DNA from: Mizuhopecten yessoensis
Lineage: Eukaryota
Assembly (NCBI RefSeq): GCF_002113885.1
Contig: NW_018407075.1
Location: 878,385 to 942,384 of the forward strand
Reading direction: 5' to 3'
DNA: 64,000 bases
Shown here piece by piece: positions 2,561 through 58,934 of the stretch; within the stretch, counting starts at the first letter, position 1, and the number at the start of each line of letters is the position of its first letter. The notes below the pieces were generated by a model. The model made no database searches. It saw nothing but the letters and a program-made list of their open reading frames with translations, and was not told the DNA's origin. Position numbers and translations under genes: made by a program.

Positions 2561-2639
2561 AGATAACAGCAAACTTGCTATGGTAGATGTCAGCAGTAGA
2601 TATATAATGGTTGATAGCCAAGTTATGCTACATAGTATA

Positions 2640-3050
2640 TACCGCATATTTGAGCTAATAAGTGCATCTGCCCCTATGAACGCACCCCCAACTTTTATTT
2701 TGGAAAAGAGGATAAATGAGCTTAATCAAAACCCCTTAAAATGTTGCTTACTTTACTGATGTGCCAAAATAATCTTCAGCCTTTTGACCAAAGACTTTGT
2801 GCCCTTTTACTGCTTTATGAAGGCAATGTAAACCAATGGACCAGCATCATTTTCTGATTAAAGATTAGGCCATTTGTCTCCGTAAAGCTATTTGATTCCT
2901 CTTTTACAATTTTACACAAATGTTTTGGAGGTCAGTTTGAACACGTACGGACACGATCAGTTTGAGCAATCAGCTTGATAGGGGATTTGTTGTGTGCCCC
3001 CTCCTTGTGTTTATGTAAGCCACAGTGCGCTTATTAGGTTGAATACAGTA
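2640..3050. mobile_element. Degenerate Tc1/mariner-pogo-type MITE
   Basis: Imperfect terminal inverted repeats taccgcatatttgagctaataagtgca / tgcgcttattaggttgaatacagta with TA at both ends; related TIR pair at 21812-21994. Confidence 0.45.
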
Positions 3051-9000: not shown

Positions 9001-9360
9001 AGAACAAATAAATGAACTCAAATATTTGATCTATAGTAAAAATGTAAATATATGGATTGAATAGCGTTTTTAAATTTTCATGCAGATGTTTAAAAATGAA
9101 GTCCAAGCGGACTTCACGCAATATGGATGTAACCGATTTGCGTTCATACCGGCATGTAAATTTAAAAACCGCTGTTCAATCCCTATATAAAAGTACGTTC
9201 ATACATGTGAAAACTTCCATGGTAGCTGAAGTTTCATTGTAGAATGTGGCAGATACATGTGTATTGATTCCATCATAAATGTTGGAAAGATGCAATTAAG
9301 AATCCTTGTCCCACTGCCTTGTGGTTTTTTTCCTGTACACAGTTACCTCCCCTTAACTTC

Positions 9361-9553
9361 CATTTAGATATGACTGAAGCACAGTTGGTTCAGGACACTT
9401 CCATCGACCATTTAGATATGACTGAAGCACAGTTGGTTCAGGACACCTCCATTGACCATTTAGATATGACTGTAGCACAGTTGGTTCAGGACACTTCCAT
9501 TGACCATTTAGATATGACTGTAGCACAGTTGGTTCAGGACACTTCCATTGACC
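9361..9553. repeat. 48-bp tandem repeat, 4 copies
   Basis: CATTTAGATATGACTG(A/T)AGCACAGTTGGTTCAGGACACTTCCATTGAC x4; explains ORF 9319-9585. Confidence 0.95.
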
Positions 9554-9792
9554 AGGTAGCCCAGTCGTTTAGAGCGATAGTATAATAATCTGAAGTACAG
9601 GGTTCGAATTCCGGTCTAGTCCCACAAAATGTTACACTCAGAACACTGTTTTTGATTATATTTTGGTTATTTCGTCTTTATTATTCTTTTTATAAAAGTC
9701 CAGCAATGTATGGTTTTCTTTTCAAAAATGGTTTATTAACGATAAAGTCATGCCGGAAAAACAGTTTCTGGCAGTGGTACGGGGATCCTTAA
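9551..9792 (-). mobile_element. Partial TTAA-type MITE containing a tRNA-like segment (same family as 23680-24049, reverse orientation)
   Basis: tRNA-like A box tagcccagtcgttt and B box ggttcgaattcc at 9551-9622; end cagtggtacggggatccttaa matches the left TIR of 23680. Confidence 0.6.
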
Positions 9793-10114
9793 ATCCTGAA
9801 ACATTCCGCTGGAGGTTTGAGAGCAGAGCACGAAAAGACAACACATCTATACTGAACTCTAGTGTACTTAGAATTATTAAAACAATCGGTACGTACCGAC
9901 ATATTCCTGATGTTGACTAACATTTCACGCGAACCACAGGAGATTAATCGTAATCAATAAAACATGGATTAACAGATCCTTGTCGGAATACATGTAACAA
10001 TAATAACCAACGATATGTTTGTCTGCTGCGAATGAAAATTGTTTCATCTACAGGAAAATTGTGGGTACAGTTTATAGTGTCTGATAAATTGGTAACGCCG
10101 ACTCACGCCAGATN

Positions 10115-10415
10115 CCCTGTGTAGTCAGTGTAATACAATTCAGCCCCCTGCCCCTGTGTAATCAGTGTTATACAATTCAGCCCCCCCCCTTCGTAATCAG
10201 TGTTATACAATTCAGCCCCCACCCCGTGTAATCAGTGTAATACAATTCAGCCCCCACCCTGTGTAGTCATTTATATACAATTCAGCCCCCTGTCCCTGTG
10301 TAGTCAGTTATATACAATTCAGCCCCCTGTCCCTGTGTAGTCAGTGTTATACAATTCAGCCCCTGTCCCTGTGTAGTCAGTGTTATACAATTCAGCCCCC
10401 TGTCCCTGTGTAGTC
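10115..10415. repeat. Fragment of 37-bp satellite bounded by single N bases
   Basis: Same unit as 11105-13430; N at 10114 and 10416. Confidence 0.85.
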
Positions 10416-11104
10416 NTCCCAGCAAGTGCTTGTTATAATATGTCAATTGTCGACTGCTCCAAGGGAAGATCTCTCAGGCTGGCTCGTACGGAGTTGGTCT
10501 ATAATAACGAGCATGGAACCCATGATCAGGAAATGTCCGACCAATATTTCTACATCTGTGTGTCTAGACAAGTCTGTTTCCTGTGTCAATGTGATGTAAT
10601 TTGACTGGAGATATCTTTGGAGGGTCCTGCTCCTTTGTTTTGGAGTGTATCTTTTATCTTTTATTTCACAAGAGTTTCACTTTCATTTGCAAGAAGAATG
10701 ATGAAGTGATGAGTAATATTGATTCTGCATGTTGTCATTTCTTAGTTTGTAAGTTCAGAATAGTGCTTAAAAGTTGTTTTAATCATAGTGATTTACAGGA
10801 TATGGAGATTTATTTTTTCTAATACCTACCCTTTGGTATTGGTGTTGAGCATTCCACTTTGAGTAAGGGTTCTGTAAGGGTTCTGTCCCTTAAAATCAGT
10901 ATTTTGTAGCTCCCTGCAGCAGGTTTTCTGTTGTGGTCTTACAAAAGAGGTGGTCTCTCAATTCAGGGTCTTCCAAGCGTTTAGAATAATTCTTATCATA
11001 AAATTGAACTGTCCGCACATGTTTATTAAAGTTTTATACAGTATAATTGAGTGTAGTACACACATATTTCTAAACAGTAAAAGGAAAATGTATATATATA
11101 ACGT

Positions 11105-13972
11105 TTTACAATTCAGCCCTCTGTCCCTGTGTAGTCAGTGTTATACAATTCAGCCTTCTGTCCCTGAGTAGTCAGTGTTATACAATTCAGCCCTCTGTCC
11201 CAGTGTAATCAGTGTTATACAATTCAGCCCTCTGTCCCTGTTTAGTCGGTGTTATACAATTCAGCCCTCTGTCCCTGTGTTATCAGTGTTATACAATTCA
11301 GCTCTCTGTCCCGGTGTAGTCGGTGTTAAAACAATTCAGCCCTCTGTCCCTGTGTAGTCAGTGTTATAAAATTCAGCCCCCTGTCCCTGTGTAGTCGGTG
11401 TTATACATTTCAGCCCCCTGTCCCTGTGTAGTCAGTGTTATTCAATTCAGCTCTCTGACCTTGTGTAGTCAATGTTAAAGCAATTCAGCCCTCTGTCCCT
11501 GTAAAGTCAGTTTTATACAGTTCAGCCCCCTTGCCCTGTGTAGTCAGTGTTATACATTTCAGCCCCCTGTCCCTGTGTAGTCAGTGTTATTCAATTCAGC
11601 TCTCTGACCTTGTGTAGTCAATGTTAAAGCAATTCAGCCCTCTGTCCCTGTAAAGTCAGTTTTATACAATTCAGCCCCCTTGCCCTGTGTAGTCAGTGTT
11701 ATACATTTCAGCTCCCTGTCCCTGTGTTATTGAAGACTTACAGATGGTTCCCCCTGTCCCTGTGTTATTGGAGACTTACAGATGGTTCCCCCTGTCCCTG
11801 TGTTATCGGAGACTTACAGATGGTTCCCCCTGTCCCTGTCCCCCTGTCCCTGTGTAGTCGGTGTTATACATTTCAGCCCCATGTCCCTGTGTAGTCAGTG
11901 TTATACAATTCAGCTCTCTGTCCCTGTGTAGTCAGTGTTATACAATTCAGCTCCCTGTCCCTGTGTAGTCAGTGTTTAACAATTCAGCCCTCTGTCCCTG
12001 TGAAGTCAGTGTTATACAATTCAGCCCTCTGTCCCAGTGTAATCAGTGTTATACAATTCAGCCCTCTGTCCCTATGTAGACAGTGTTATACAATTCAGCT
12101 CTCTGTCCCCGTGTAGTTGGTGTTATACAATTCAGCCCTCTGTCCCTGTGGAATCAGTGTTATACAATTCAGCTCTCTGTCCCTGTGTAGTCGGTGTTAT
12201 ACAATTCAGCCCCCTGTCCCTCTGTAGTCGGTGTTATACAATTCAGCCCCCTGGCCCTGTGTAGTCAGGGTTATACAATTCAGCCCCCTGTCCCTGTGTT
12301 ATCAGTGTTATACAATTCAGCTCTCTGTCCCGGTGTAGTCGGTGTTAAAACAATTCAGCCCTCTGTCCCTGTGTAGTCGGTGTTATACCATTCAGCTCTC
12401 TGTCCCTGTGTAGTCAGTGTTATACAATTCAGCTCTCTGTCCCTGTGTAGTCGGTGTTAAACCAATTCAGCCCCCTGTCCCTGTGTAGTCAGTGTTAGAC
12501 AATTCAGCCCCCTGTCCCTGTGTTATCAGTGTTATACAATTCAGCTCTCTGTCCCTGTGTAGTCGGTGTTATACAATTCAGCCCTCTGTCCCTGTGGAAT
12601 CAGTGTTATACAATTCAGCTCTCTGTCCAGTGTAATCCGTGTTATACAATTCAGCTCTCTGTCCCTGTGTAGTCAGTGTTATACAATTCAGCTCTCTGTC
12701 CCTGTGTAGTCAGTGTTATACAATTCAGCTCCCTGTCCCTGTGTAGTCAATGTTATACAATTCAGCCCTCTGTCCCTGGGTAGTCGGGGTTAAGACAATT
12801 CAGCCCTCTGTCCCTGGGTAGTCAGTGTTATACAATTCAGCCCCCTGTCCCTGGGTGGTCAATGTTATACAATTCAGCCCTCTGTCCCTGGGTAGTCGGG
12901 GTTAAGACAATTCAGCCCTCTGTCCCTGGGTAGTCAGTGTTATACAATTCAGCCCCCTGTCCCTGGGTGGTCAATGTTATACAATTCAGCCCTCTGTCCC
13001 TGGGTAGTCGGGGTTAAGACAATTCAGCCCTCTGTCCCTGTGTAGTCAGTGTAATACAATTCAGCCCCCTGTCCCTGTGTAGTCGGTGTTATACAATTCA
13101 GCCCTCTGTCCCTGTGTAGCCGGTGTTATACAATTCAGCCCCCTGTCCCTGTGTTATCAGTGTTATACAATTCAGCTCTCTGTCCCTGTGTAGTCGGTGT
13201 TATACAATTCAGCCCTCTGTCCCTGTGTAGTCAGTGTTATACAATTCAGCCCTCTGTCCCTGTGTAATCAGTGTTATACAATTCAGCTCTCTGACCTTGT
13301 GTAGTCAATGTTAAAGCAATTCAGCCCTCTGTCCCTGTAAAGTCAGTTTTATACAGTTCAGCCCCCTTGCCCTGTGTAGTCAGTGTTATACATTTCAGCC
13401 CCCTGTCCCTGTGAAGTCAGTGATATTCATTTCATCCCCCTGTCCCTGTGTTATTGGAGACTTACAGATGATTCCCCCTGTCCCTGTGTTATTGGAGACT
13501 TGCAGATGGTTCCCCATGTCCCTGTGTTATTGGAGACTTACAGATGGTTCCCCCTGTCCCTGTGTTATTGGAGACTTATAGATGATTCCCCCTGTCCCTG
13601 TGTTATTGGAGACTTATTGATGATTCCCCCTGTCCCTGTGTTATTGGAGACTTATAGATTGTTCCCCCTGTCCCTGTGTTATTGAAGACTTACAGATGGT
13701 TCCCCCTGTCCCTCTGTTATCGGAGACTTACAGATGGTTCCCCCTGTCCCTGTGTTATTGGAGACTTATAGATGGTTCTCCCTGCCCCTGTGTTATTGGA
13801 GACTTATAGATGGTTCCCCCTGTCCCTGTGTTATTGGAGACTTGTAGATGGTTCCCCCTGTCCCTGTGTAGTCGGTGATATACAATTCATCCCCATGTCC
13901 CTGTGTTATTGGAGACTTATAGATGGTTCCCCCTGTCCCTGTGTTATTGGAGATTTATAGATGGTTCCCCCT
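11105..13972. repeat. Satellite of a 37-bp unit (TACAATTCAGCCCTCTGTCCCTGTGTAGTCAGTGTTA) with blocks of a related 38-bp unit (CCCCCTGTCCCTGTGTTATTGGAGACTTACAGATGGTT)
   Basis: Direct tandem copies; 38-bp blocks at about 11715-11830 and 13435-13972. Confidence 0.95.
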
Positions 13973-14125
13973 TGGACTTATCAGTAAACAAGTAGGGCCT
14001 TCCTGTCCTGTAACAACATGATAATGAAACAACTACAAGTGTCATCAGCATGCTACACCTTAAACTTTAAGGAAGCTAGGACCGGTGTTTCTGCTTTTAA
14101 GGATCCTTGTGTCAAGGGGAATGTG

Positions 14126-14216
14126 ATAACTCATTTACCCCTGAAGACACACTTGAACTCTTCCAATTCAAAAGTTGGAATAGTTCATTATGAAATTTCA
14201 GGGGTGAATGAGTTAA
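14126..14216. mobile_element. About 90-bp palindromic MITE with TTAA-like flanks (piggyBac-like)
   Basis: TIR (t)aactcatttacccctgaa / ttcaggggtgaatgagttaa; second copy at about 18897-18980 and a right end at 8091-8114. Confidence 0.65.
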
Positions 14217-14700
14217 TAGAAATGTCATAATTGTTTAAGGTTTAGATCTGAAACGGTAATCAAATGGTGTATTCTTTTAATTCTGAAAATAAGTTTTGAC
14301 AATATGCAAGACAAAGTCATTTTCTATTGATCTCATATTTGAACATCTGGAATACTGATGATTAAAAATGGAATTTTATTTGATTGTTTAAAAACCATGT
14401 TTTTCAGTCAAGTATAATCACATGAACAGTATAATACTGAGAATTGCTGAGTGGAACATATGGCATGGTTCATAAAATATTGACAGATTTGTAATAAAAT
14501 ACAAACTTCAATGTTCTTTTTGAGAGAATTTCTATTACTTAAAATTCAGATCAAAGAGAAATTGATCCGCCTATTTAGAATGGCTTGTGACATTGCTCAG
14601 CTGAAACGGCAGATAGTCACGGTTACTCTAAGTAGTGTGTTGTAACACCAATGTAGAATTTGGCTGAAGGTTTGTAACCATAAATTTGTCACTTTTCGTG

Positions 14701-14900
14701 TTAAGGATCCCCGAACCCCCAAAACTGTAACTTAGTATTGAAAACTAAATTGCTCTAGCTTAGATAAATCATTTCTGAAAAGAAAATTATAACTTGCGGG
14801 ACCTTTATCAGAAATAATAAAGATAAAAAATTAAAATATCAACAACAGTATTCTGAGAGTAAAACATTGAGCTGGGCTATAATTCTGACATGTTATTCCC
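14701..14900 (+). mobile_element. Left part of TTAA-type MITE (family of 23680-24049)
   Basis: ttaaggatccccgaacccccaaaactgtaact...catttctgaaaagaaaa aligns with 23680-23790; right end approximate. Confidence 0.55.
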
Positions 14901-15571
14901 CCCATGTTATTATATCTGTGAAATCTGTCTCTCAATATTCAAAGAAAACCACTTAACATCATTCATATCTGTTAATAACAAATGTTAGATGAAATATAGG
15001 CTTTGACTTTCTAGATATCTGAAATAATGTAGTTTAAATCCTGCTTCAAACAGTTCAAGATCTTTAGCATAGTTGAAACTTTTATAGTGATAATTCTTGA
15101 TGTAATTAGTCATCGTTATTTAATCTTTTAATGATTTTATGGAGGTGGCAATTATAACTTGTTCAAAGAAGCCAAGATATTCAGATGTTTGTTAATTATA
15201 CATGTAAAAAATGAAAACGCGAAAATTGTATGAGTGGTTTAATCATTCAGCTGTGATGCACTTTAAAGAAACGTTTTTTATATCGCTGTGATGCACCCAT
15301 GAATCATTTGTTCTATGATCTGCTGGAACTAGTGTCATGTTGTTGTTATTGGAAACATCATGGGAGTAAGGATCAAATTCTCATCAAAACTTAATGATGC
15401 TTATCTAATCCCACATGGTAATAAATCAGTCATCTTTGAAGTATTGGGTTAGGTGGTTGTGACTCAAAACTATTACTCAACAGAGAGCTTTGAGGTCAAA
15501 TATTAAACATGTTAGAAATGAAAATTCACAAAATCTACCAGATTAGAAAAGTCGTTATCATGCCAAAATTT

Positions 15572-15790
15572 GGGTGCTCTGGTGGTGCAGTGGATAACTT
15601 TTCGCTAAGGTGGCCAGGGTTCGATTCCCCTATCAGACGTGTAAAGGTATGGGGTCACCCCCCCGTCCGCGTGGGTTTTCTCCTGGTACTCCGGTTTCCT
15701 CCTACATTTATATCCCCATAATGCTAACATTAGAGTGATTAGTATAAGTTGTGATAACTTGTTTCATAATTATCGTAAAATAAATGAAGT
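15572..15790 (+). mobile_element. tRNA-derived SINE with V-domain-like core
   Basis: A box tggtgcagtgg, B box ggttcgattccc, core gtgggttttctcctggtactccggtttcctcc. Confidence 0.75.
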
Positions 15791-21994: not shown

Positions 21995-22173
21995 ATATAT
22001 TTTTATATACAATTTTCTATTTTAAGATACTGTAAATACATAACACTTTGATACATTTATTGAATGATCTATAAAACAGATATTTTTGCTCTCTTGCCAA
22101 AATTTAGTGGCAGTGGTAATTAATAAGAATGGTGATATATCGTTTAATAATGACATGGTTTTGTGTGTTTCAG

Positions 22174-22742
22174 TGGCAGAGCCAGGGGCTGGCTTTGACT
22201 CCCGAGGAGTGGGTCTCAAGATCCAGAAGAAACTCCTTGGAAAAATGTCAAGCAAGTCGATCGCAAAACACTTTATTGATGACACCACAAGTAAAGTTTT
22301 AGATGCAGCCTACAAAATCATCAAGGAATATTCGAACAAAAAAGACGCCGAGAAGATGATGAAATATCTCATCAAAATTGTCGTAAAAGTTGGAATATTG
22401 TATCGAAATGACCAATTCAATGCAGAAGAGCTGGCAATGGCCGATTCATTCAAGAAAAAATTCCATTCATTATCTATGACAGTCATTAGTTTTCACGAAG
22501 TGGAGTTTACATACGACTCAGTCTTTCTGAAGTCGAGCGTTGAAGAGTGCAGACAAATGCTTCAGACTCTGATAGAGCGTCATTCAACAGACAAGACGAA
22601 AGGACGGGTAGACCATGTGTTCCATTCGTTTTGTGACGAGAGTCTAATGGATGTGATTTTCGCACCTGAAGGAAAATGCCGCGATTTAATGGAGAGTATA
22701 GTGACAAATTTACGAAAAATGATGGACGAAGGAAATTTATGA
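22174..22742 (+). CDS. TNFAIP8: TNF-alpha-induced protein 8 (TIPE) family protein, main coding exon (189 aa with the split ATG)
   Basis: Hallmark motifs QKKLLGKM, FIDDT, LIKIVVKVGILYRNDQF, MTVISFHEVEFTYD, KGRVDHVF and C-terminal KMMDEGNL; acceptor gtgtttcag ends at 22173, phase 1. Confidence 0.95.
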
Positions 22743-42689: not shown

Positions 42690-42916
42690 TTACTTGGAGG
42701 TGGAGGCAGACATTGATGTACGACTTCCGGACCGGCTACGTTTCCTCTCCTTAGCCTCCTTCATACGCATAGCCAACAACTTAGCATAATCCGCAGCATC
42801 TTCACGCTTCTTGGATGCCCTTTTCCTCTTAAGAGCGACCTTGTGGCGTTTGCGCTGAAGCACAACTGGAGTCACAAGTCGCTGGATCTTGGGGGCCTTT
42901 GTTTTGGCCTTCTTGC
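42690..42916 (-). CDS. RPS6: 40S ribosomal protein S6, coding exon 5 (last)
   Basis: (G)[24 protein letters not shown]...[13 protein letters not shown]...ASTSK*; acceptor atctgcag, phase 1. Confidence 0.97.
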
Positions 42917-43329
42917 CTGCAGATAAAGGAAGTTAAGCTCAAATTGATTCGGTATTTACAACAACTTGCCCGATTTATCATCACTTTTACTAGCAAAATA
43001 TAAACATGAAATATTCTTAGCAACTCTTATCTCATTACATGTGGTATTTTTATCTGAATTAAAAACATGAAGTTAAGATCTTGGCTTCTGTTTTCAGTTG
43101 CCCAGGACCTTTTGTCCCGAGTTGACAAAAACATGTTTATAGGTTAAATCCAATTTTACAAAACCTACCTTTACTGCTTCATATAAACATATTGTTTGTA
43201 TTTCTTTTTTGAATATTGGACAGACAAGTAAAATGTCTGTTGCCTATTGGAACCAAAGAAGACATCGTAATGCTTTCTTTGACATACTGAAATATATTTA
43301 TAGACTAGAGAGACTCCGTATAAACGTAC

Positions 43330-43479
43330 CCTCTTTCTGTGGAAGTGGTCGCCTTACGACGTACTGGCGGACATCATCCTCCTTTGTTAAGTTAAAAAGC
43401 TTCCTGATCTTGCTAGCCCTTTTGGGTCCCAGCCTCCTGGGGACGTTGGTGTCGGTCAAGCCTGGGATGTCCTGCTCAC
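43330..43479 (-). CDS. RPS6: 40S ribosomal protein S6, coding exon 4
   Basis: [31 protein letters not shown]...; tttgcag acceptor, gtacg donor, 150 nt. Confidence 0.97.
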
Positions 43480-44217
43480 CTGCAAATTGGGAACACATGG
43501 TACATCAAAGAATATTTACATTTCTACTGAACTTGGACTCAATATACCTACTTAACATTTTAAAGGTTATTTTTCAATGAACTTTTCAGTTGGCATATGA
43601 ATACATCAGCATATTATCAACCTAATATCTCTGTTATTCCGCGGAGCGCGGGAAGTAGTTCCATCAATAGATTGTTTTCAATTTGTTGTTTTAAAAATAA
43701 TTTACATCTTAGTTTGCTTATTCATCTTAACAGGACGACGTCTCACAGTGAGTGATGACGTCATAAGTTTTTATACCCCATAAACCTCAACAAAACAGAA
43801 TTCAATCCTTAATTATCCATTAATTAATTTGTGTATTAATTTTATTACATGTTAATATTTACTATAACCACATATCATATCACGGTGCTCAGGTTTTTCT
43901 GGAGGAAACTGCTCCAAATCTGTTATTAACACACAAGGTTGCTTCAATTTTCCCATTGTATCAAAACTCAACTCCCAATATTTGGACCTGCTTTGGCTCA
44001 ATTTAGATATATAGCAGAGGTGAAAACGGACTCCAAGCAATTGTGTTGCAATCCTGGTCTCCATAGAAACCTAATAGATAATAGTTTTTTTTTTGATTTT
44101 ATGGTATGTTCTCTTATTTTTAGAATTTAATACCTATACCTAATGGTAAACCTGTTAATCTCACTTGGCCCTTTGGACCATGTCAGCTCTAAATTAAATG
44201 ACAGATTTCAGAAACAT

Positions 44218-44303
44218 CACAGTCCTCAGATTTTTCTCTCTTCACAGACCCAATTTGAGTCTCTAAGCGAGCTGGGTGTATAATTGTCATCATTGTAACT
44301 GTG
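44218..44303 (-). ncRNA. SNORD29: Box C/D snoRNA, SNORD29/U29-like, copy 1
   Basis: Terminal stem CACAG/CTGTG, C box ATGATGA, guide ACCCAGCTCGC, D' TAGA, internal hairpin, C' GTGAAGA, D box CTGA; intronic and sense to RPS6. Confidence 0.85.
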
Positions 44304-44950
44304 ATATCAGTTATATATCATAAATGTTGTCAGTTTCCAATTTTAAAGAATAATTTGCTATGTTTCCCCTATTGGGCCCCGCCCCTCAGGCCCCAAGCCA
44401 ACGGTTATTACAAAATTGGTTCCCCTTCACCCAAGGATGCTTCAGACCAAATATGGAACAAATACTTGCATTGCTAAAGAAGAAAAGGATTTTAAAGAAT
44501 TTGGTATATTTCCCCTATTGGGCCCCGCCCCTCAGCCCCACCGTTTATACAAAATTGGTTCCGCTTCCCCCAAGAATGCTTTTAGCAAGTCAAGATGAAA
44601 TAAAGTTTGAATCAAAAGAAAATTTTGTATCTTTTAAAAGGTATTTTGCAATATTCAACATTAGCAATCTTTTGACCAGTTGAGCTGAAACCCAATTTTC
44701 TTTCGTGAATTTCGGCCTATACCTATCAAGTGTGTCCAACACTATAAGGTTTGTTTGCACCACAGTCACAATTTGAGTTTATAAAAGTATTTATTACAAT
44801 GTTACCATAATCATGGAGGGAACAATGTAAACAAGTATCACTTGATTTATTTCATGTATTTAAATGATGTAATAATTTGCAATTGTGGTAAAGCTGACAC
44901 ATAAAAAACTGATTCATCTCGAAATATTGCAAGGTTTTCTAAAAATATCA

Positions 44951-45036
44951 AACAGTCCTCAGATTTTTCTCTCTTCACAGACCCACTTTGAGTCTCTAAG
45001 CGAGCTGGGTGTATAATTGTCATCATTGAAACTGTG
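44951..45036 (-). ncRNA. SNORD29: SNORD29-like snoRNA copy 2
   Basis: All boxes and guide intact. Confidence 0.85.
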
Positions 45037-45500
45037 ATACGTAAGTTTGGCCTTCTTGCCTGAAGATAATAGAAGTTAAGCTTAAACAGTGTAGGGATTT
45101 TCAACAACTTCCAAGACTTTTTAATAGCAAATTTTATCTACTCATATGTAGCATTTTAAATATAATGAAAAATTCGTTTTTTTCTGGAGAAACTACTCCA
45201 AATCTGTTATTAACACACAAGGTTGCTTCAATTTTTCCATTGTATCAAAACTTAACTCCCAATATTTGGACCTGCTTTGGCTCAAGTAAGATATATAGCA
45301 GAGGTGAAAAAGGACTCCCAAGCAATTGTGTTGCAATCCTGGTCTCCATAGAAACCTAATAGATAATAGGCTTTTTTGATTTTATGCTAAGTTCTCTTAT
45401 TTTTAGAATTTAATACCTATACCTAATGGTAAACCTGTTAATCTCACTTGGCCCTTTGGACCATGTCAGCTCTAAATTAAATGACATATTTCAGAAACAT

Positions 45501-45586
45501 CACAGTCCTCAGATTTTTCTCTCTTCACAGACCCAATTTGAGTCTCTAAGCGAGCTGGGTGTATAATTGTCATCATTGTAACTGTG
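45501..45586 (-). ncRNA. SNORD29: SNORD29-like snoRNA copy 3
   Basis: All boxes and guide intact. Confidence 0.85.
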
Positions 45587-45741
45587 ACATCAGTAATATA
45601 TCATAAATGTTGTCAGTTTCAGATTTAATGGTATTTTCTCTTATTTACGGACTAAATACAGATACCTATGTGTATACCTGTTATCTCACTTGGCCCTTTG
45701 GAGCAGGCAAGCTAAAAATTAAACAATTGATTTAGAAACTT

Positions 45742-45827
45742 AACATTCCTCAGATTTTTCTCTCTTCACAGACCCATTTTGAGTCTCTAAGCGAGCTGGG
45801 TGTATAATTGTAATCATTGTGACTGTG
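45742..45827 (-). ncRNA. SNORD29: SNORD29-like snoRNA copy 4 (C box variant, possibly non-functional)
   Basis: C box ATGATTA and weakened terminal stem; guide and D box intact. Confidence 0.65.
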
Positions 45828-46318
45828 ATATAAGTAATAGAACATAAATAGTATCAGTTTCTAGTTTTACTGATTGGGATATTAATAAATGTATAAAGCG
45901 AATCCAGATTATGGAAATTTTGAACCAATAGAAAACTTTGATCTTTTAAAAATCTCTCTTGCAAAGTAAATGAATGGTGTTAGCACACATCTCTTGACCA
46001 GTTGAGTGGCAATTTTCTTGGTACATATCTGGCCTGATCTTGACCTAAAGTCTGTCCAATAAAAAAGATTAATTTGCTTCACAGACCCACTTTGATTCAT
46101 GTCAACAACTATATAAATAATATAAGTGAAGATATTAAGATTAAAGATGGAACGCTGGAAATATATATTATCTTTGAACATTCTACACTGGTATGGTCCA
46201 TCTTTGTGTACCTGGTATTTCAATGATGCAATACTTTGCAACTCTGGTAAAGCCAACAGACCTTTTCAAAAACAATTCATCTTCAGATATTGCAAGTGTT
46301 TTAAAAAAAATGTCCCAA

Positions 46319-46404
46319 CACAATCCTCAGATTTCTCTCTCTTCACAGACTCACTTCGAGTCTCTAAGCGAGCTGGGTGTATAATTGTCATCATTGTGAC
46401 TGTG
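46319..46404 (-). ncRNA. SNORD29: SNORD29-like snoRNA copy 5
   Basis: Boxes intact; internal stem AGACTC/GAGTCT fully Watson-Crick. Confidence 0.85.
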
Positions 46405-46759
46405 ATACTCAAGTTTGGCGTTCTTGCCTGAAGATAGTAGAAGTTAAGCTCAAACAGTGTATTATCACACAAGCTTGCTTCAATTTTCCCATCATATCAA
46501 AACTTAACTCCCAATATTTAGACCTGCTTTGGCCAAAGTTAGATATATAGCAGAGGTGAAAACGGACTCAAAGGAATTGTGTTGCAATCCTGGTCTCCAT
46601 AGAAATCCAATAGATAATAGGCTTTATTTTTGATTTTATGGTATGTTCATTTATTTTTTACAATTTAATGCCTATACCTAATGGTAAACCTGTTAATGAG
46701 TCTCACTAGGCCCTTTGGACCATGTCGGCTCTAAATTAGATGACAGATTTCAGAAACAT

Positions 46760-46845
46760 CACAGTACTCAGATTTTTCTCTCTTCACAGACCCATTTTGA
46801 GTCTCTAAGCGAGCTGGGTGTATAATTGTCATCATTGTGACTGTG
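46760..46845 (-). ncRNA. SNORD29: SNORD29-like snoRNA copy 6
   Basis: All boxes and guide intact. Confidence 0.85.
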
Positions 46846-47508
46846 ATATCAGTAATATATCATAAATGTTGTCAGTTTCCAATTTTAAAGAATAATTTGC
46901 TATGTTTCCCCTTTTGGGCCTCGCCCCCTCAGGCCTCGGGGGGTGGGTGGCCAGACCCACGGTTTATATAAAATTGGTTCCCCTTCACCCAAAGATGCTT
47001 CTGACCAAATATTGAACAAATCCTTGCATTCCTACAGAAGAAAATGATTTTAAAGAATTTGCAATATTTCCCCTGTTGGGCCCCCCAGACCCCTCCGTTT
47101 ATACAAAATTGGTTCCCCTTCACCCAAGAATGCTTTTAGCGAGTCAAGATGACAGAAAGATTGAATCAAAAGAAAATTTTGTATCTTTTAAAAGGTATTT
47201 TGCAATATTCAAAGTTAGCAATCTTTTGACCAGTTGAGCTGAAACCCAATTTTCTTTTGTGTATTTCGGCCTATACCTATCAATTGTGTAGAATACTAAA
47301 AGGTTTGTTTGCACCACAGACGCAATTTGAGTTTATAAAAGTATTTATTACAATGTTACCATAATCATGGAGGGAACAATGTAAACAAGTATCACTTGAT
47401 TTATTTCATGTATTTAAATGATGTAATAATTTGCAATTGTGGTAAAGCTGACACATAAAAAAACCTGATTCATCTCGAAATATTGCAAGGTTTTCTTAAA
47501 ATATCCAA

Positions 47509-47595
47509 CACAGTCCTCAGATTTTTCTCTCTTCACAGACCCACTTTTGAGTCTCTAAGCGAGCTGGGTGTATAATTGTCATCATTGTTACTGTG
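47509..47595 (-). ncRNA. SNORD29: SNORD29-like snoRNA copy 7
   Basis: Boxes intact; 1-nt insertion in the internal loop. Confidence 0.85.
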
Positions 47596-48054
47596 ATACT
47601 CAAGTTTGGCGTTCTTGCCTGATGATAATAGAAGTTGAGCTCAAACTGTGTAGGGATTTTCAACAGCTTCCAAGACTTTTTAATAGCAAATTTTATCTAC
47701 TTATATGTAGCATTTTAAATATAATGTAAAATTCAGGTTTTTCTGGGGGAAACTGCTCCAAATCTGATTAACACACAAGGCAATTTTTCCATTGTATCAC
47801 AACTTAACTCCCAATATTTGGACCTGCTTTGGCTCAAGTAAGATATATAGCAGAGGTGAAAACGGACTCCAAGCAATTGTGTTGCAATCCTGGTCTCCAT
47901 AGAAACCTAATAGATAATAGGCTTTATTTTTGATTTTATGGTATGTTCTCTTATTTTTGCAATTGAGTACCTATACCTAATGGTAAACCTGTTAATCTCA
48001 CTTGGCCCTTTGGACCATGTCGGCTCTAAATTAAATGACATATTTCAGAAACAT

Positions 48055-48140
48055 CACAGTCCTCAGATTTCTCTCTCTTCACAGACCCATTTTGAGTCTC
48101 TAAGCGAGCTGGGTGTATAATTGTCATCATTGTGACTGTG
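48055..48140 (-). ncRNA. SNORD29: SNORD29-like snoRNA copy 8
   Basis: All boxes and guide intact. Confidence 0.85.
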
Positions 48141-48563
48141 ATATCAGCAATATATAATAAATATTGTCCATTTCATCAAGTTATGCTGATTTTGATTTAC
48201 ATAAATGTGTTTAGCGAGTCAAGATGACAGAATTAGCGAGTAAAGATAACAGAAAGTTTGAATCAAAAGAAATTTTGTATCTTTTAAAATGTATTTTGCA
48301 ATATTCAACGTTACCTATCTTTTGACCAGTTGAGCTAAAACCCAATTTTCTTTTGTGTATTTCGGCCTATACCTATCAAGTGTGTCCAATACTAAAAGGT
48401 TTGTTTGCTCAACAGACGCAATTTGAGTTTATAAAAGTATTTATTACAATGTTACCATAATCATGGATGGAACAATGTAAACACGTATCACTTGATTTAT
48501 TTTCATGTATTTAAATGATGTAATAATTATCGAGATATTGCAAGGTTTGCTAAAAAAATATCC

Positions 48564-48649
48564 AACAGTCCTCAGATTTTTCTCTCTTCACAGACCCATT
48601 TTGAGTCTCTAAGCGAGCTGGGTGTATAATTGTCATCATTGTGACTGTG
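48564..48649 (-). ncRNA. SNORD29: SNORD29-like snoRNA copy 9
   Basis: All boxes and guide intact. Confidence 0.85.
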
Positions 48650-48811
48650 ATATCAGTAATATATCATAAATAATATCAGTTTCAGATTTAATGGTATTGT
48701 CTCTTATTTACGGACTAAATACCGATACGTATGTGTATGTATACCTGTTTAATCCCACTTGGCCTTTTGGACCAGGCAAACTAAAAATTAAACAATTGAT
48801 TTAGAAACTTA

Positions 48812-48867
48812 ACAGACCCATTTTGAGTCTCTAAGCGAGCTGGGTATATAGTTGTCATTGTTACTGT
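48812..48867 (-). pseudogene. Truncated SNORD29-like copy
   Basis: C' and D boxes deleted and C box shortened; guide retained. Confidence 0.8.
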
Positions 48868-49369
48868 CATCAGTGATAGAACATACATAGTGACAGTGTC
48901 ATTAACTTAATCTGATTTCTATATAGTATCTTAGCAAGTCAATATTATAGCAAAAATAGAAAAATTGATGTTTTAAAGTCTCTTTTGCAAAAACTAATGC
49001 ATTGTGTCAGCAGACATCTTTTGATCAGTTGAGTTGAACCCAACTTTTGTTGAGTATTTCGGCTACTATCTTTCAAGTGTGTCTTAATACAATATTTTTT
49101 TGCGCTTTCACAGACCCACTTTACGTCGTTACGAGTGTTTATTACAATGAAACCATTATCATGTCCACAACTATACAAACAATAATTGAAGTAGTTCAGA
49201 TTTATGAGGGAACATTGGGAATACATATTACTTCAGAAATTCTACACTTGTACGAGTAATCTTTGTGTATTTCAATTGCAATGATGCAATAATTTGTAGC
49301 TGTGGTATAGTATAGTTATCAGACATTTTCAAGGTTTTCTAAAACACATCCATCAGATTTCGGAAACAT

Positions 49370-49455
49370 CACAGTCCTCAGATTTTTCTCTCTTCACAGA
49401 CCCATTTTGAGTCTCTAAGCGAGCTGGGTGTATAATTGTCATCACTGTGACTGTG
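49370..49455 (-). ncRNA. SNORD29: SNORD29-like snoRNA copy 10
   Basis: C box GTGATGA (still RTGATGA); other elements intact. Confidence 0.85.
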
Positions 49456-49774
49456 ATATCAGTAATATATCATATCATAAAGTATTTAGCGAGTCAAGAT
49501 TACAGAAAGTATGAATGAAAAGAATGTTTTCTCTCTTTTAAAATGTGTTTTGCAATATTCAACGTTACCAATCTTTTGACCAGTTGAGCCGAAACCCAAT
49601 GTTCNAAAGGTTTGTTTGCTCAACAGACGCAATTTGAGTTTATAAAAGTATTTATTACAATGTTACCATAATCATGGATGGAACAATGTAAACACGTATC
49701 ACTTGATTTATTTTCATGTATTTAAATGATGTAATAATTATCGAGATATTGCAAGGTTTGCTAAAAAAATATCC

Positions 49775-49860
49775 AACAGTCCTCAGATTTTTCTCTCTTC
49801 ACAGACCCATTTTGAGTCTCTAAGCGAGCTGGGTGTATAATTGTCATCATTGTGACTGTG
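49775..49860 (-). ncRNA. SNORD29: SNORD29-like snoRNA copy 11 (possible assembly duplicate of copy 9)
   Basis: Intact; lies in the 1211-bp-offset duplication that follows the N at 49605. Confidence 0.7.
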
Positions 49861-50022
49861 ATATCAGTAATATATCATAAATAATATCAGTTTCAGATTT
49901 AATGGTATTGTCTCTTATTTACGGACTAAATACCGATACGTATGTGTATGTATACCTGTTTAATCCCACTTGGCCTTTTGGACCAGGCAAACTAAAAATT
50001 AAACAATTGATTTAGAAACTTA

Positions 50023-50078
50023 ACAGACCCATTTTGAGTCTCTAAGCGAGCTGGGTATATAGTTGTCATTGTTACTGT
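50023..50078 (-). pseudogene. Truncated SNORD29-like copy (duplicate of 48812-48867)
   Basis: Same deletion as 48812-48867. Confidence 0.7.
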
Positions 50079-50580
50079 CATCAGTGATAGAACATACATA
50101 GTGACAGTGTCATTAACTTAATCTGATTTCTATATAGTATCTTAGCAAGTCAATATTATAGCAAAAATAGAAAAATTGATGTTTTAAAGTCTCTTTTGCA
50201 AAAACTAATGCATTGTGTCAGCAGACATCTTTTGATCAGTTGAGTTGAACCCAACTTTTGTTGAGTATTTCGGCTACTATCTTTCAAGTGTGTCTTAATA
50301 CAATATTTTTTTGCGCTTTCACAGACCCACTTTACGTCGTTACGAGTGTTTATTACAATGAAACCATTATCATGTCCACAACTATACAAACAATAATTGA
50401 AGTAGTTCAGATTTATGAGGGAACATTGGGAATACATATTACTTCAGAAATTCTACACTTGTACGAGTAATCTTTGTGTATTTCAATTGCAATGATGCAA
50501 TAATTTGTAGCTGTGGTATAGTATAGTTATCAGACATTTTCAAGGTTTTCTAAAACACATCCATCAGATTTCGGAAACAT

Positions 50581-50666
50581 CACAGTCCTCAGATTTTTCT
50601 CTCTTCACAGACCCATTTTGAGTCTCTAAGCGAGCTGGGTGTATAATTGTCATCACTGTGACTGTG
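50581..50666 (-). ncRNA. SNORD29: SNORD29-like snoRNA copy 12 (possible assembly duplicate of copy 10)
   Basis: C box GTGATGA; intact. Confidence 0.75.
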
Positions 50667-51142
50667 ATATCAGTAATATATCATACATGTTGTCAGTTTC
50701 ATTAAGTTTAAGTTTTGCTGATTTTGATATACATAAAAGTATTTAGCAAGTCAAGATTACAGAAAGTATGAATGAAAAGAATGTTTTCTCTCTTTTAAAA
50801 TGTGTTTTGCAATATTCAACGTTACCAATCTTTTGACCAGTTGAGCCGAAACCCAATGTTCTTTTGTGTATTTCGGCCTATACCTATCAAGTGTGTCCAA
50901 TACTATAAGGTTTGTTTGCTCCACAGACGCAATTTGAGTTTATAAAAGTATTTATTACAATGTTACCATAATCATGGAGGGAACAATGTAAACAAGCATC
51001 ATTTTAGAAATTCAACACCAGTATGATTTATTTTTGTGTATTGAAACTATGTAATAATTTGCAATTGTGGTGAAGCCGACACACATTAAAATAAATATCT
51101 GATTCATCTCGAGATATTGCAAGGTTTTCTAAAAATATTCAA

Positions 51143-51228
51143 CACAGTCCTCAGATTTTTCTCTCTTCACAGACCCATTTAGAGTCTCTAAGCGAGCTGG
51201 GTGTATAATTGTCATCATTGTGACTGTG
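51143..51228 (-). ncRNA. SNORD29: SNORD29-like snoRNA copy 13
   Basis: All boxes and guide intact. Confidence 0.85.
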
Positions 51229-51673
51229 ATATCAGTAATATATCATAAATGTTGTCATGTTTCATTTTGTTTTGCTGATTTTGATATACATAAATGTATT
51301 TAACGAGTCAAGATAACAGAAAGTTTGAATCAAAATCCAATTTTGTATCTTTTAAAATGTATTTTGCAATATTCAACGTTACCAATCTTTTGACCAGTTG
51401 AGCTGAAACCCAATTTTCTTTTGTGTATTTCGGCCTATACCTATCGAGTGTGTCCAATCCTTTAAGGTTTGTTTGCTCCACAGACACAATTTGAGTTTAT
51501 AAAAGTATTTATTACAATGTTACCATAATCATGGAGGGAACAATGTAAACAAGTATCACTTGATTTATTTTCGTGTATTTAAATGATGTAATAATTTGCA
51601 ATTGTGGTAAAGCTGACACATAAAAAAACCTGATTCATCTCGAGATATTGCAAGGTTTTCTAAAAATATCCAA

Positions 51674-51759
51674 CACAGTCCTCAGATTTTTCTCTCTTCA
51701 CAGACCCACTTTGAGTCTCTAAGCGAGCTGGGTGTATAGTTGTCCTCATTGGTACTGTG
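51674..51759 (-). ncRNA. SNORD29: SNORD29-like snoRNA copy 14 (5'-most in the transcript; C box variant)
   Basis: C box ATGAGGA; guide, D', C' and D intact. Confidence 0.7.
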
Positions 51760-52166
51760 TTTGCTAAGTTAGCTTACAAGTTGCATCTATTATACATGTC
51801 ATTGTTACCAAAACTATCCAGAAAGTTGATATCTATGATTATTATTTTTAGATCCCACTACACATCAGCAATAAGTGCCCCCCTGCTCTCCATATTTTCA
51901 CAAACAGAATAGCCCTATGGACATTACCAGGTAAAACATTTGCGTTTGCATTTTTTTGTTATAACACTAAGCCAAGAATTAAAAACCAACCTAAGTACAG
52001 GATATTATTCAGGGCAAGTACATGTAGTAACTGCAGAACATGCAAGATACTTGCCCCATACGATTAACTCTTTTGTTCATTTGCTAGTAATATTTGATTT
52101 CATTTAAAAAGGTGCACTATGTTATGCATATATGTAATATTTCTGTTAGTACTAACAGCAGCGTAC

Positions 52167-52377
52167 CTTTTTTGACAATAGACATAGACAGAACACTCAG
52201 GTTACTGTCTACGATGCAGCCCCTGACAGACTTCCTGCGCCTCTCGCCACTCCTCCTGGGTCTGAAGCAAGAGTGACCTTTGCTCAAAAGAAGACGCACT
52301 CTGCCATTGGTGAGAATTCCCTGTTTCATTGGGAACCCCTGCTTGTCGTTACCTCCCGTTATCCTCAGAATGTAACC
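52167..52377 (-). CDS. RPS6: 40S ribosomal protein S6, coding exon 3
   Basis: [31 protein letters not shown]...[10 protein letters not shown]; 211 nt; ttttacag acceptor, gtacg donor. Confidence 0.97.
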
Positions 52378-53029
52378 CTGTAAAACATGATAAGCGTTAC
52401 TTTAAATTTCTTACAATGAAGCCATCAGATCAAATACAGCACTAGCTCCTATCTATGATAATAAAGGTATGGTCTATTAGATTAATTTTATAGACGGGTA
52501 AGTATTATTAAATTCACAAAAAAATATCCAGCCTTCTTTTAACATGTCTATAAGATTTCACTTTTTTCAAATTTCTACTTCTCATCTGTAGGTAAGCTTG
52601 GTACATAATTGAACAGTGATAAATCTACATGCGAGTCCTGTACCAATAGAATTTTGATCTGACTCATAGAATTTCTGAAATACTGAAATTTAACATGTCG
52701 GGGTCAGGACCCATATCTTGACCATCCAGTGGAAAAAGACCCATACAAACTATTTGTAGATTGATCACTGTAATTGTCATCCTAGTGACCAGATTTGTTC
52801 CCCGTTAATTTGTGAAATTTGTGCAACTTAATCTGAATATAATACTGACCAAGACGTTTTATCTTAACAAACATCCAAATCGGACAATGCTTGTTGTGTT
52901 GCCAATTCCATTTGGACCCAGAGTGAGAACTCACTACTGAATATGAATTTTCTTAAATTTTGCTCTCAAAATCATTGGCTTTCTTGACAACTCTATAGCA
53001 AATATTCCCCCTTTCAAGATTTATTTTAC

Positions 53030-57631: not shown

Positions 57632-58934
57632 TTAGCTCACCTGGTCCAAAGGACCAAGGTGAGCTTATGTCCGTCCGTCGTCCGTCTGTCCGTCAACAAT
57701 TTCTTTAAACGACTTCTTCTTCTTAACCACTGATTGGAATTTAACTGGAAGCATCCCTAAGTGGTGGGGATTCAAAATTGTACAAATGGTGGGGCTGACC
57801 CCCCAGGAGGCTGAGGGGCGGGGCCAAAAGGGGGCAATTTGGCTAAACTGCTTTAAGCGACTTCTTCTCTGGAACCAAGTGATGGATATCAACCATATTA
57901 GACTGGAAGCATCCCTAGGTGGTGGAGATTCAAAATTGTACAAATGGTTGGGCTGACCCCCCAGGGGGGTGAGAGGCGGGGCCAGAAAGGGTAATTTGGC
58001 TATATTTCTATAAACGACTTCTTCTGTAGAACTATGCACTGGATATCGATCATATTTAATCAAAAGCATTCATGGGATGCAGGGATTCAAAATTGTACAA
58101 ATTGTGGGGCTGACTCCCCAGGGGGCTGANNNNNNNNNNNNNNNNNNNNNNNNNNNNNNNNNNNNNNNNNNNNNNNNNNNNNNNNNNNNNNNNNNNNNNN
58201 NNNNNNNNNNNNNNNNNNNNNNNNNNNNNNNNNNNNNNNNNNNNNNNNNNNNNNNNNNNNNNNNNNNNNNNNNNNNNNNNNNNNNNNNNNNNNNNNNNNN
58301 NNNNNNNNNNNNNNNNNNNNNNNNNNNNNNNNNNNNNNNNNNNNNNNNNNNNNNNNNNNNNNNNNNNNNNNNNNNNNNNNNNNNNNNNNNNNNNNNNNNN
58401 NNNNNNNNNNNNNNNNNNNNNNNNNNNNNNNNNNNNNNNNNNNNNNNNNNNNNNNNNNNNNNNNNNNNNNNNNNNNNNNNNNNNNNNNNNNNNNNNNNNN
58501 NNNNNNNNNNNNNNNNNNNNNNNNNNNNNNNNNNNNNNNNNNNNNNNNNNNNNNNNNNNNNNNNNNNNNNNNNNNNNNNNNNNAGACTTAACCCCTGGGT
58601 CATAACTTTGAAACGGTTGAGATCCCCACCCCAAAACTATATATACAAATGCTGGGCAAAAAGAGACAAATGCAGTCATGATATTTGAATTGATCCTGGG
58701 GTCTGGCCACAACCGTAGGGACCTAGTTTCTGAGTCACAGATTGGAAACAGTTGAGATCCCCACCCCATAACCATACATAAAATTGCTGGGCATGAAAAA
58801 TTGAATACAGATATATATGCTACAAGGATTGGCCTTGGGGTCTGGCATATTCCCATGGATCTCATTTGGAGAATATTCTGCCATGATTGCTTAGATATCC
58901 AGGTGAGCGATACAGGCCCTATGGGCCTCTTGTT
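57632..58934 (+). mobile_element. Helentron/HINE-like element with (GTCC)n microsatellite and about 150-bp internal repeats, spanning the assembly gap
   Basis: 5' ttagctcacctggtccaaaggaccaaggtgagc hairpin then gtccgtccgtcgtccgtctgtccgtc; 3' caggtgagcgatacaggccctatgggcctcttgtt. The two ends could belong to different copies because of the gap. Confidence 0.8.
58130..58583. other. Assembly gap (N run)
   Basis: 454 N bases. Confidence 1.

Follow-up and report, generated by a model that had tools for sequence, protein, structure and literature searches.

A tandem array of box C/D snoRNA genes related to the SNORD29 clan within a single RPS6 intron of Mizuhopecten yessoensis

A 64,000-nucleotide stretch of the Mizuhopecten yessoensis genome (RefSeq assembly GCF_002113885.1, contig NW_018407075.1, positions 878,385 to 942,384; this whole stretch is called the window, and its own numbering is used throughout) carries the ribosomal protein gene RPS6 on the minus strand, and one intron of this gene is filled with near-identical copies of a small nucleolar RNA (snoRNA) gene. 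The evidence presented here argues, with a probability that we place at about 0.7, for a genuine tandem array of SNORD29-clan box C/D snoRNA genes in this intron, which has evolved by birth and death of copies and reflects a habit of the genome as a whole.

The repeated element is an 86-nt core, present in the window as 14 full-length and two truncated copies. A BLAST search with one copy, a repeat search and a covariance model derived from the 14 full-length sequences concurred on this count, in agreement with an earlier reading of the bare DNA letters (the sequence-only reading), which had also placed all copies sense to RPS6. All 16 BLAST matches were on the minus strand within 44198-51759, with the truncated ones at 48808-48885 and 50019-50096. 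The model assigned 112-121 bits to the full-length copies and 61 bits to the truncated form, and nothing comparable was found elsewhere in the window. The start-to-start spacing measured in the repeat search was 241-806 bp (about 240-750 bp in the sequence-only reading).

Named by increasing coordinate and all lying on the minus strand, the copies confirmed as intact by alignment and model are c1 (44218-44303, 120.8 bits), c2 (44951-45036, in which the outermost stem pair is lost and the flanks extend the stem with a bulge), c3 (45501-45586, identical to c1 in sequence), c6 (46760-46845), c7 (47509-47595, with a 1-nt insertion in a loop), c8 (48055-48140), c9 (48564-48649), c10 (49370-49455, with the C box GUGAUGA) and c13 (51143-51228). 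The most divergent intact copy is c5 (46319-46404). Copy c4 (45742-45827) has the C box AUGAUUA, a C-to-A change in the stem and a lost outer pair, and c14 (51674-51759), with the C box AUGAGGA, is possibly impaired. The truncated t1 (48791-48885, 61 bits) derives from a c4-like copy; deletions disrupt its C box and 5' stem, and its D box and 3' stem are deleted.

The intron holding these copies spans 43480-52166 on the minus strand (8,687 nt) and reads GT at 52166-52165 and AG at 43481-43480. RPS6 exons were searched singly against Pfam, and two exon translations matched Ribosomal_S6e (E values 1e-32 and 6e-12). The exon upstream of the array intron (52167-52377, minus strand, ending in SIVKK) is one of these (E 1.3e-32), and the exon downstream (43329-43479, minus strand, EQDIPGLTD...PLPQKEG) was recognized from its open reading frame (ORF) translation and from an RNA contig covering 43329-43481 at a depth of 2,100-15,700. 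The expression data consisted of contigs only, from three RNA runs belonging to two studies, and were compared with the contigs of one DNA run (2025); the depth survey of the intron extended up to position 49289. In all three RNA runs the contigs contained the direct exon-exon joint 43479/52167 (the loose end at 43481 continues with 52167 onward), and the 8.7-kb intron is spliced out as one unit. The adjoining RPS6 introns measure about 0.4-0.65 kb versus 8.7 kb for the array intron, which together with the GT and AG ends and the RNA joints corroborated the outsized intron described from the letters.

The order of elements within the core, from 5' to 3', is a terminal stem, the C box, a spacer, an 11-nt guide (ACCCAGCUCGC), the sequence UUAGA holding the D' box, a hairpin, a C'-like motif and the D box. 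The terminal stem (CACAGU/ACUGUG) has 6 bp, lengthened by the flanks to 8-11 bp in one flank class, with one pair broken in c4 and one turned into G.U in c5. The C box reads AUGAUGA or GUGAUGA in 12 of the 14 copies, the remainder being c4 and c14, and the D box CUGA is present in all 14. The internal hairpin (GACUC-AAAAU-GGGUC, 5-6 bp) sits between D' and C', and the C'-like GUGAAGA is followed by nine A-rich bases before the D box. Thus the terminal stem, C and D boxes, D'/C' pair and internal hairpin proposed earlier were all recovered in the alignment and structure of the 14 copies. No compensatory pair was found among the copies, which are too alike to provide covariation support for the structure. 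By their C and D boxes, terminal stem and guide to ribosomal RNA (rRNA), the copies are box C/D snoRNA genes, and assembly of their transcripts into small nucleolar ribonucleoproteins (snoRNPs) is predicted.

The number of copies in the assembly needs to be interpreted in concert with the independent DNA data. The segment 49606-50689 is 100% identical over 1,084 bp to 48395-49478, and a single N at 49605 falls exactly at its boundary. This duplicate block contains two full copies and one truncated copy, namely c11 (49775-49860), t2 (50002-50096) and c12 (50581-50666), all on the minus strand. Contigs unique to the block (48642-48810 and 48816-49289) had k-mer depths of 11.3 and 13.5 in the independent DNA run, in which an RPS6 exon had 12.1 and another unique spacer 15; because these depths are exon-like, the block is single-copy in the animal of that run. 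The second copy of the block therefore probably arose by duplication in the assembly or represents a copy-number variant, and the perfect duplication together with the single-copy depth makes 12 full copies a safer count than the 14 first proposed, which holds for the assembly. Additionally, alternative joins between units in RNA and DNA contigs of other individuals (48500 to 47404, and 47732 to 43889) hint at structural polymorphism among individuals.

The same duplication could be taken to mean that the array is for the most part an artefact of assembly, a repeat wrongly collapsed or expanded of which only one or two copies truly exist, and the perfect 1,084-bp duplicate beside an N, as well as two unplaced contigs that repeat array sequence at 100% identity, would fit such an account. 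These contigs, C44673 (343 bp) and C35992 (290 bp), are identical to 47503-47845 and 48103-48392 of the window and are assembler leftovers. However, the independent 2025 DNA contigs cover at least seven unique spacers at single-copy depth, each of them flanked by core sequence, and RNA contigs from other studies likewise cover core-flanked unique spacers, so the chance that the array is largely an artefact appears close to negligible. Across the 988-Mb assembly the core was found at this locus only, apart from the two small redundant contigs, and its identification as a dispersed repeat or short interspersed element (SINE) was rejected for its restriction to this locus.

The identity of the snoRNA was addressed by an Rfam covariance scan, a check suggested by the sequence-only reading, which gave a divided answer: nothing at the gathering thresholds and a consistent resemblance to one clan below them. 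At relaxed thresholds every copy matched snR69 (snosnR69, RF00475) or snoR69Y (RF01198), both of clan CL00051, with 21-33 bits versus cut-offs of 45-50; the best scores were 33.1 bits (threshold 50) and 29.6 bits (threshold 45). These alignments span the C box, the guide, the hairpin and the D box, and snR69 and snoR69Y were the only similarities detected. CL00051 is the SNORD29 clan (U29/snR71/snR69), whose members act on one rRNA segment: U29 and snR71 guide methylation of an A (Am) there, and snR69 and snoR69Y that of a C (Cm) lying two bases further downstream (PMC3511168; PMC10899779). Judged by these sequence similarities, the array snoRNA is related to snR69 and snoR69Y in function and clan, at a level below the membership threshold of either family.

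The comparison with the members of this clan can be extended to individual features. SNORD29, snR71, snR69 and snoR69Y have the same C/D architecture as the array snoRNA, with a guide upstream of D' complementary to the same segment of 28S/25S rRNA (GUGAGCUGGGU), and the internal hairpin between D' and C' is common to snR69, snoR69Y and the RPS6 array. The predicted target of the array snoRNA is likewise the Am or Cm site of yeast, plants and human. The differences are the scores of 21-33 bits below gathering thresholds of 45-50, the 12-14 tandem copies versus one, a 2-nt insertion relative to snoR69Y, which shifts the register towards the U29-type A site, and a host that is an RPS6 intron rather than a noncoding multi-snoRNA host.

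The guide was compared with the large subunit (LSU) rRNA of the same genome. Around the target, the LSU rDNA, whose identity was checked with RF02543, reads GTGAGCTGGGTTTAGACC / GUGAGCUGGGUUUAGACC, and the guide pairs with this 28S rRNA at GUGAGCUGGGU over 11 bp including one G.U pair, and it has no other 11-bp match in the 4.4 kb of LSU. Counted back from D', the fifth nucleotide pairs with an A or a C, both of which are methylated in yeast (PMC10899779). If the D' box is UAGA, the predicted 2'-O-methylation would fall on the A corresponding to human A4493 and yeast A2946 (the U29 type), and if it is CUUA or CUGA, the target would be the C two bases downstream (the snR69 site). In human U29, the register sets the A of GUGA*GC opposite the fifth position before D', and the array snoRNA would share this register if its D' box is UAGA. 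In the 4.4 kb of LSU, the only rRNA searched for a second guide, the nine bases preceding the D box have no match of at least 8 bp, and the snoRNA is probably a single-guide one. A genome-wide search with a pattern of C box, guide and D' found only the 12 members of the array whose C box is intact and one redundant contig, which makes the array the only detectable source of this guide.

The choice between the two D' boxes was informed by homologues in metagenome contigs. An exact 21-mer of the core had no match in these contigs, and a degenerate core pattern retrieved six of them, three of which (L023, L026 and L027) are eukaryote-like and carry real snoRNA homologues; the other three, with a GC content of 60-64%, were set aside as chance matches by their appearance. 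The three homologues read CGCUUAGA, CGCUUAGA and CGCUGAGA and share with the array the signature CCCAGCUCGCU(U/G)AGA. Across the four taxa the GA dinucleotide is invariant, occurring as UAGA or GAGA, and the G of a putative CUGA varies. As the invariant part belongs to UAGA, this sequence is favored as the D' box, and with it the A as the predicted target.

No RPS6 exons were found on the three homologue-bearing contigs. One of them (L027, JACCDP010234942.1, 800-1150, minus strand) has two U29-like snoRNA copies parted by an apparent short exon, with SNORD31- and SNORD27-like genes nearby. Its organization looks like that of an SNHG1-like host with one snoRNA per intron. In human, U29 is presumably hosted by SNHG1, where SNORD31- and SNORD27-type snoRNAs accompany it.

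The presence of many snoRNA copies in one intron removed as a unit makes the array polycistronic, as the sequence-only reading had proposed, and implies that their release would need more than trimming from the two ends of the intron. The whole RPS6 intron is excised, as observed in the RNA contigs, and the individual snoRNAs would then be freed by cleavage within the spacers and subsequent exonucleolytic digestion back to each snoRNP. The depth of the spacers in the RNA contigs bears on this scheme. RPS6 exons had RNA depths of 8,072, 15,691 and 2,101 in the three runs, and unique spacers of 356-650 nt had depths of about 8-40, that is, about 0.1% of the exon depth and no different from the part of the intron outside the array. 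Relative to a satellite repeat present in about 12,000 copies, spacer depth in RNA was far from the ratio in DNA, and for this reason the spacer signal is not simply contaminating DNA. Among the joints listed for the three RNA runs there were no internal GT-AG junctions.

The low depth of the long spacers also bears on the suggestion, made in the sequence-only reading, that the intron gives rise to multi-kilobase snoRNA-capped long noncoding RNAs (sno-lncRNAs). As a rival explanation, such RNAs with their many binding sites for C/D proteins would act as a protein sponge, and the prerequisite, many snoRNAs in one intron, is present (PMC4234469). The long unique spacers at intron background contradict this and indicate that multi-kilobase snoRNA-capped RNAs do not accumulate; only the 155-nt spacer described below was enriched, and we regard such sno-lncRNAs and the sponge as highly improbable.

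The shortest spacer of the array, 155 nt between c4 and c3 (45587-45741, minus strand), behaves differently. A contig covering it (45550-45772) had RNA depths of 432, 662 and 164 versus 11 in DNA and about 10-23 for other unique spacers, a 7- to 80-fold enrichment, and the unique contigs adjoining c4 on its upstream side and c3 on its downstream side were at background (about 8-50). Depth was 0-13 in the homologous spacer that follows t1, a truncated copy lacking the D box. This enrichment suggests a two-snoRNA species of about 327 nt with c4 as its 5' partner and c3 as its 3' partner and with both ends protected by snoRNPs, where strand, ends and size are predictions. Separation of the two snoRNAs across so short a spacer would be inefficient, so that the bounded species would accumulate, as the contig depth supports. 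The folding of the c4-spacer-c3 unit was not unusually stable (z = -1.4), and the spacer had no Rfam family match.

A further route of release was considered on account of a splice acceptor found within the array. A BLAST search and aligned flanks identified a copy of the acceptor between RPS6 intron 4 and exon 5 at 45046-45110 on the minus strand (83% identity over 65 nt, E 1e-15), consisting of a polypyrimidine tract, CAG and then GCAAGAAGGCCAAA, with the true site at 42903-42967. Copies of this acceptor end 9 nt upstream of c2, c5 (about 46414-46478) and c7 (about 47605-47669), and are most simply the scar of an old duplication. Alternatively, they could act in nested or recursive splicing that breaks the intron into smaller lariats, an idea encouraged by the completeness of the three acceptors (branch-like CTTAAC, polypyrimidine tract and CAG) at 9 nt from snoRNA 5' ends and by the exon end, where AAG joined to GCAAGA would recreate a GC-type donor-like sequence. 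However, no joint or loose end was found at the acceptor copies among those listed for the three RNA runs, the prevailing junction bypasses the intron in its entirety, several copies would remain in every sub-intron, and a mere duplication scar would account for the same sequences. Splicing-assisted release thus seems very unlikely.

Substitutions among the copies provided information about the constraint acting on the array. The 14 copies represent 11 distinct sequences separated by at least 19 substitution events, only two of which fall within the 32 motif positions (C box, guide, D', C' and D box; binomial P = 0.010). Alignment columns 22-47 (26 nt comprising the guide, D' box and 5' arm of the hairpin) are invariant, and two stem changes, both in c5, preserve pairing (U.G to U-A in the hairpin and G-C to G.U in the stem). 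In five independent older pairs of copies the core had 19 mismatches in 430 positions (4.4%) versus 104 in 761 (13.7%) in the homologous flanks (Fisher p = 1.6e-7), with cores 92-95% and homologous flanks 72-80% identical.

The array also contains copies in more advanced stages of decay. The repeat search recovered a decayed relic at 44761-44834 (minus strand), which has neither guide nor D box and no match to the model, and seven further relics on the same strand at 47315-47388, 48411-48484, 49109-49182, 49622-49695, 50320-50393, 50922-50995 and 51479-51552. Alignment to the core covered six of them, all but the duplicates at 49622 and 50320, and seven of the eight gave weak model matches of 11-17 bits. 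The flanks of the copies are mosaic; for example, c3 combines the upstream flank of c9 with the downstream flank of c8, which implies crossovers within cores. The array probably grew as units of about 1.28 and 2.55 kb went through repeated rounds of unequal crossing-over. In total, the array amounts to about 10-12 intact copies, two with a damaged C box (c4 and c14), one truncated copy and eight relics. Additionally, the next RPS6 intron upstream has a 12-bit model match (E about 2) at 52725-52793 on the minus strand, which shares GAUGACAAUUA and AUGGGUCU with the core and may be, from this resemblance, an old relic copy in the neighboring intron or a chance match.

Several observations weigh against the interpretation of the array offered here. 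In the youngest duplicate pairs, core and flank divergence are equal (p = 0.39), and the relics, which ride on recently duplicated units, are 96-100% alike. Much of the uniformity of the copies is therefore due to recent duplication or gene conversion. Regarding identity and target, no copy matches any Rfam family at the gathering thresholds, and the candidate methylation targets in 28S rRNA are the A or the C of GUGAGCUGGG, a matter that the choice of D' decides, with methylation itself being predicted. Regarding expression, the RNA data are contigs of long-fragment libraries that miss small RNAs, from which mature snoRNA levels cannot be read, so that the dosage amplification proposed in the sequence-only reading is a conjecture, and an RNA contig reaching 77 nt into c5 is at background depth only. 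Lastly, the c4-c3 RNA is a species predicted from contig depth, and its presumed 5' cap, c4, has a G-to-U change in the C box that might weaken snoRNP assembly.

Part of this evidence would be equally expected under neutral amplification, in which one or a few copies suffice, the others are passengers of duplication and conversion, and copy number drifts between individuals. The equal divergence of core and flank in recent pairs, non-functional relics as alike as the cores, the disabling changes in c4, c14 and t1, the mosaic flanks left by crossovers inside cores, and the alternative joins in other individuals together with one block at single-copy depth all point in this direction. Substitutions nevertheless avoid motif positions, older cores are better conserved than their flanks, every motif is intact in 12 copies, and a second snoRNA host locus, discussed below, shows similar amplification. 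Neutral amplification as the whole explanation is for these reasons rather unlikely. The earlier claim that the core is far better conserved than the spacers accordingly holds for older pairs and fails for recent duplicates, and the related claim of selection on many copies has weaker support than that reading gave it, in view of the equal core and flank divergence of recent duplicates and the damaged, truncated and decayed copies. Altogether, the array has undergone birth-and-death evolution with purifying selection on the motifs, where selection on every single copy is not demonstrable.

Other elements occur in the spacers and elsewhere in the window. The c1-c2 spacer contains two monomers of a satellite-like repeat of about 155 bp (44340-44581), with a DNA contig depth of 154,000 versus 12 for single-copy sequence. 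The repeat is found again at about 46891-47140 in the duplicated super-unit, and across the genome, where it is dispersed as short tandem runs over many loci, more than 100 matches were scored. ORF translations suggest that it is also present at 57.6-58.9 kb, near a gap of 454 Ns (58130-58583). A different element, at 44850-44908 on the plus strand and at eight related sites, is antisense to RPS6 and has a conserved AAUGAUGUAAUAAUUUG...GCUGACACA, C- and D-box-like motifs and a closing stem of 4 bp; its length of about 50 nt is below that of typical snoRNAs, and several of its copies no longer have the D-like box. Away from the array, a single-exon TNFAIP8-like (TIPE) gene lies at 22086-22742 on the plus strand (Pfam PF05527, E 3e-67).

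Clusters of snoRNAs within introns are known from rice (Liang et al. 2002) and Drosophila (Huang et al. 2005; both cited in PMC2780460), and the fly intronic clusters have been described as H/ACA (PMC3089462). According to PMC2780460, these clusters consist of several sense snoRNA genes in one protein-coding intron, implying polycistronic processing. The RPS6 array has this organization, with at least two sense snoRNAs in one intron, no exon between them and the direct joint in three RNA runs, but is unusually large and differs in that one C/D snoRNA has been amplified 12- to 14-fold in one ribosomal-protein intron. Tandem C/D arrays of mammals contain orphan snoRNAs and show non-allelic recombination and conversion, gain and loss of copies and flank-defined subfamilies (PMC11028025). 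SNORD115/116, SNORD113/114 and rat Bsr share with the RPS6 array the local tandem amplification of one C/D snoRNA; the imprinted arrays of the SNORD115/116 type have an orphan guide and a noncoding host whose repeated introns hold one snoRNA each, whereas the RPS6 array has an rRNA guide in a single intron of a coding gene. Intronic clusters and tandem arrays were thus already known, and what is new here is a homogeneous array of 12-14 copies of a canonical rRNA guide in one ribosomal-protein intron. A recent review expected new tandem arrays in understudied genomes (PMC11028025).

The closest parallel to the predicted 327-nt species is the mouse SNORD33-SNORD34 sno-lncRNA of RPL13A, which is 344 nt long (PMC4234469). 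Both involve two snoRNAs at a short interval in one ribosomal-protein intron; the array RNA, a species predicted from contig depth, differs in having an upstream copy, c4, with a weakened C box. The human Prader-Willi sno-lncRNAs are kilobase-long, whereas the longer spacers of the RPS6 array are not stabilized.

A second locus of the genome indicates that the RPS6 array is not isolated. An RPL7A-like locus (C5240:1343001-1353000, minus strand) has two Ribosomal_L7Ae exon matches and eight SNORD36 copies scoring 30-78 bits (gathering threshold 30), four of which lie between the two exon matches. It also contains three identical SNORD24-like units and six or seven SNORD15-like units of about 125 nt, all on the strand of the gene. 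As this locus also has snoRNA arrays, the RPS6 array is one case of a genome-wide habit. In human, RPL7A is taken to host SNORD24 and SNORD36, and by this analogy the hosting may be ancient. On a further contig (C1201, 7303-9900 of the excerpt), a minisatellite with a 32-bp period and at least 75 units lies beside another gene with an L7Ae domain.

For intronic snoRNAs of animals, the main route of release is held to be exonucleolytic trimming after the intron has been debranched, a model that explains both the rule of one snoRNA per intron and the formation of sno-lncRNAs from introns with two. As a tentative and rather doubtful extension of these results, the lineage may have abandoned this rule genome-wide, placing rRNA-guide C/D snoRNAs in tandem in the introns of housekeeping genes (RPS6 and the RPL7A-like gene). 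If so, an efficient endonucleolytic release from spliced introns, similar to that of plants or yeast, would be required, a pathway that to our knowledge has not been described in animals, and pairs with short spacers would escape cleavage and persist as snoRNA-capped dimers. A dozen intact rRNA-guide copies in one intron constitute a natural test case for a different release route; of its spacers, the long ones fail to accumulate and the shortest alone does so. Additionally, the array offers a compact example of birth-and-death evolution with its own internal controls, in which intact, damaged, truncated and decayed copies of the same snoRNA gene lie side by side.

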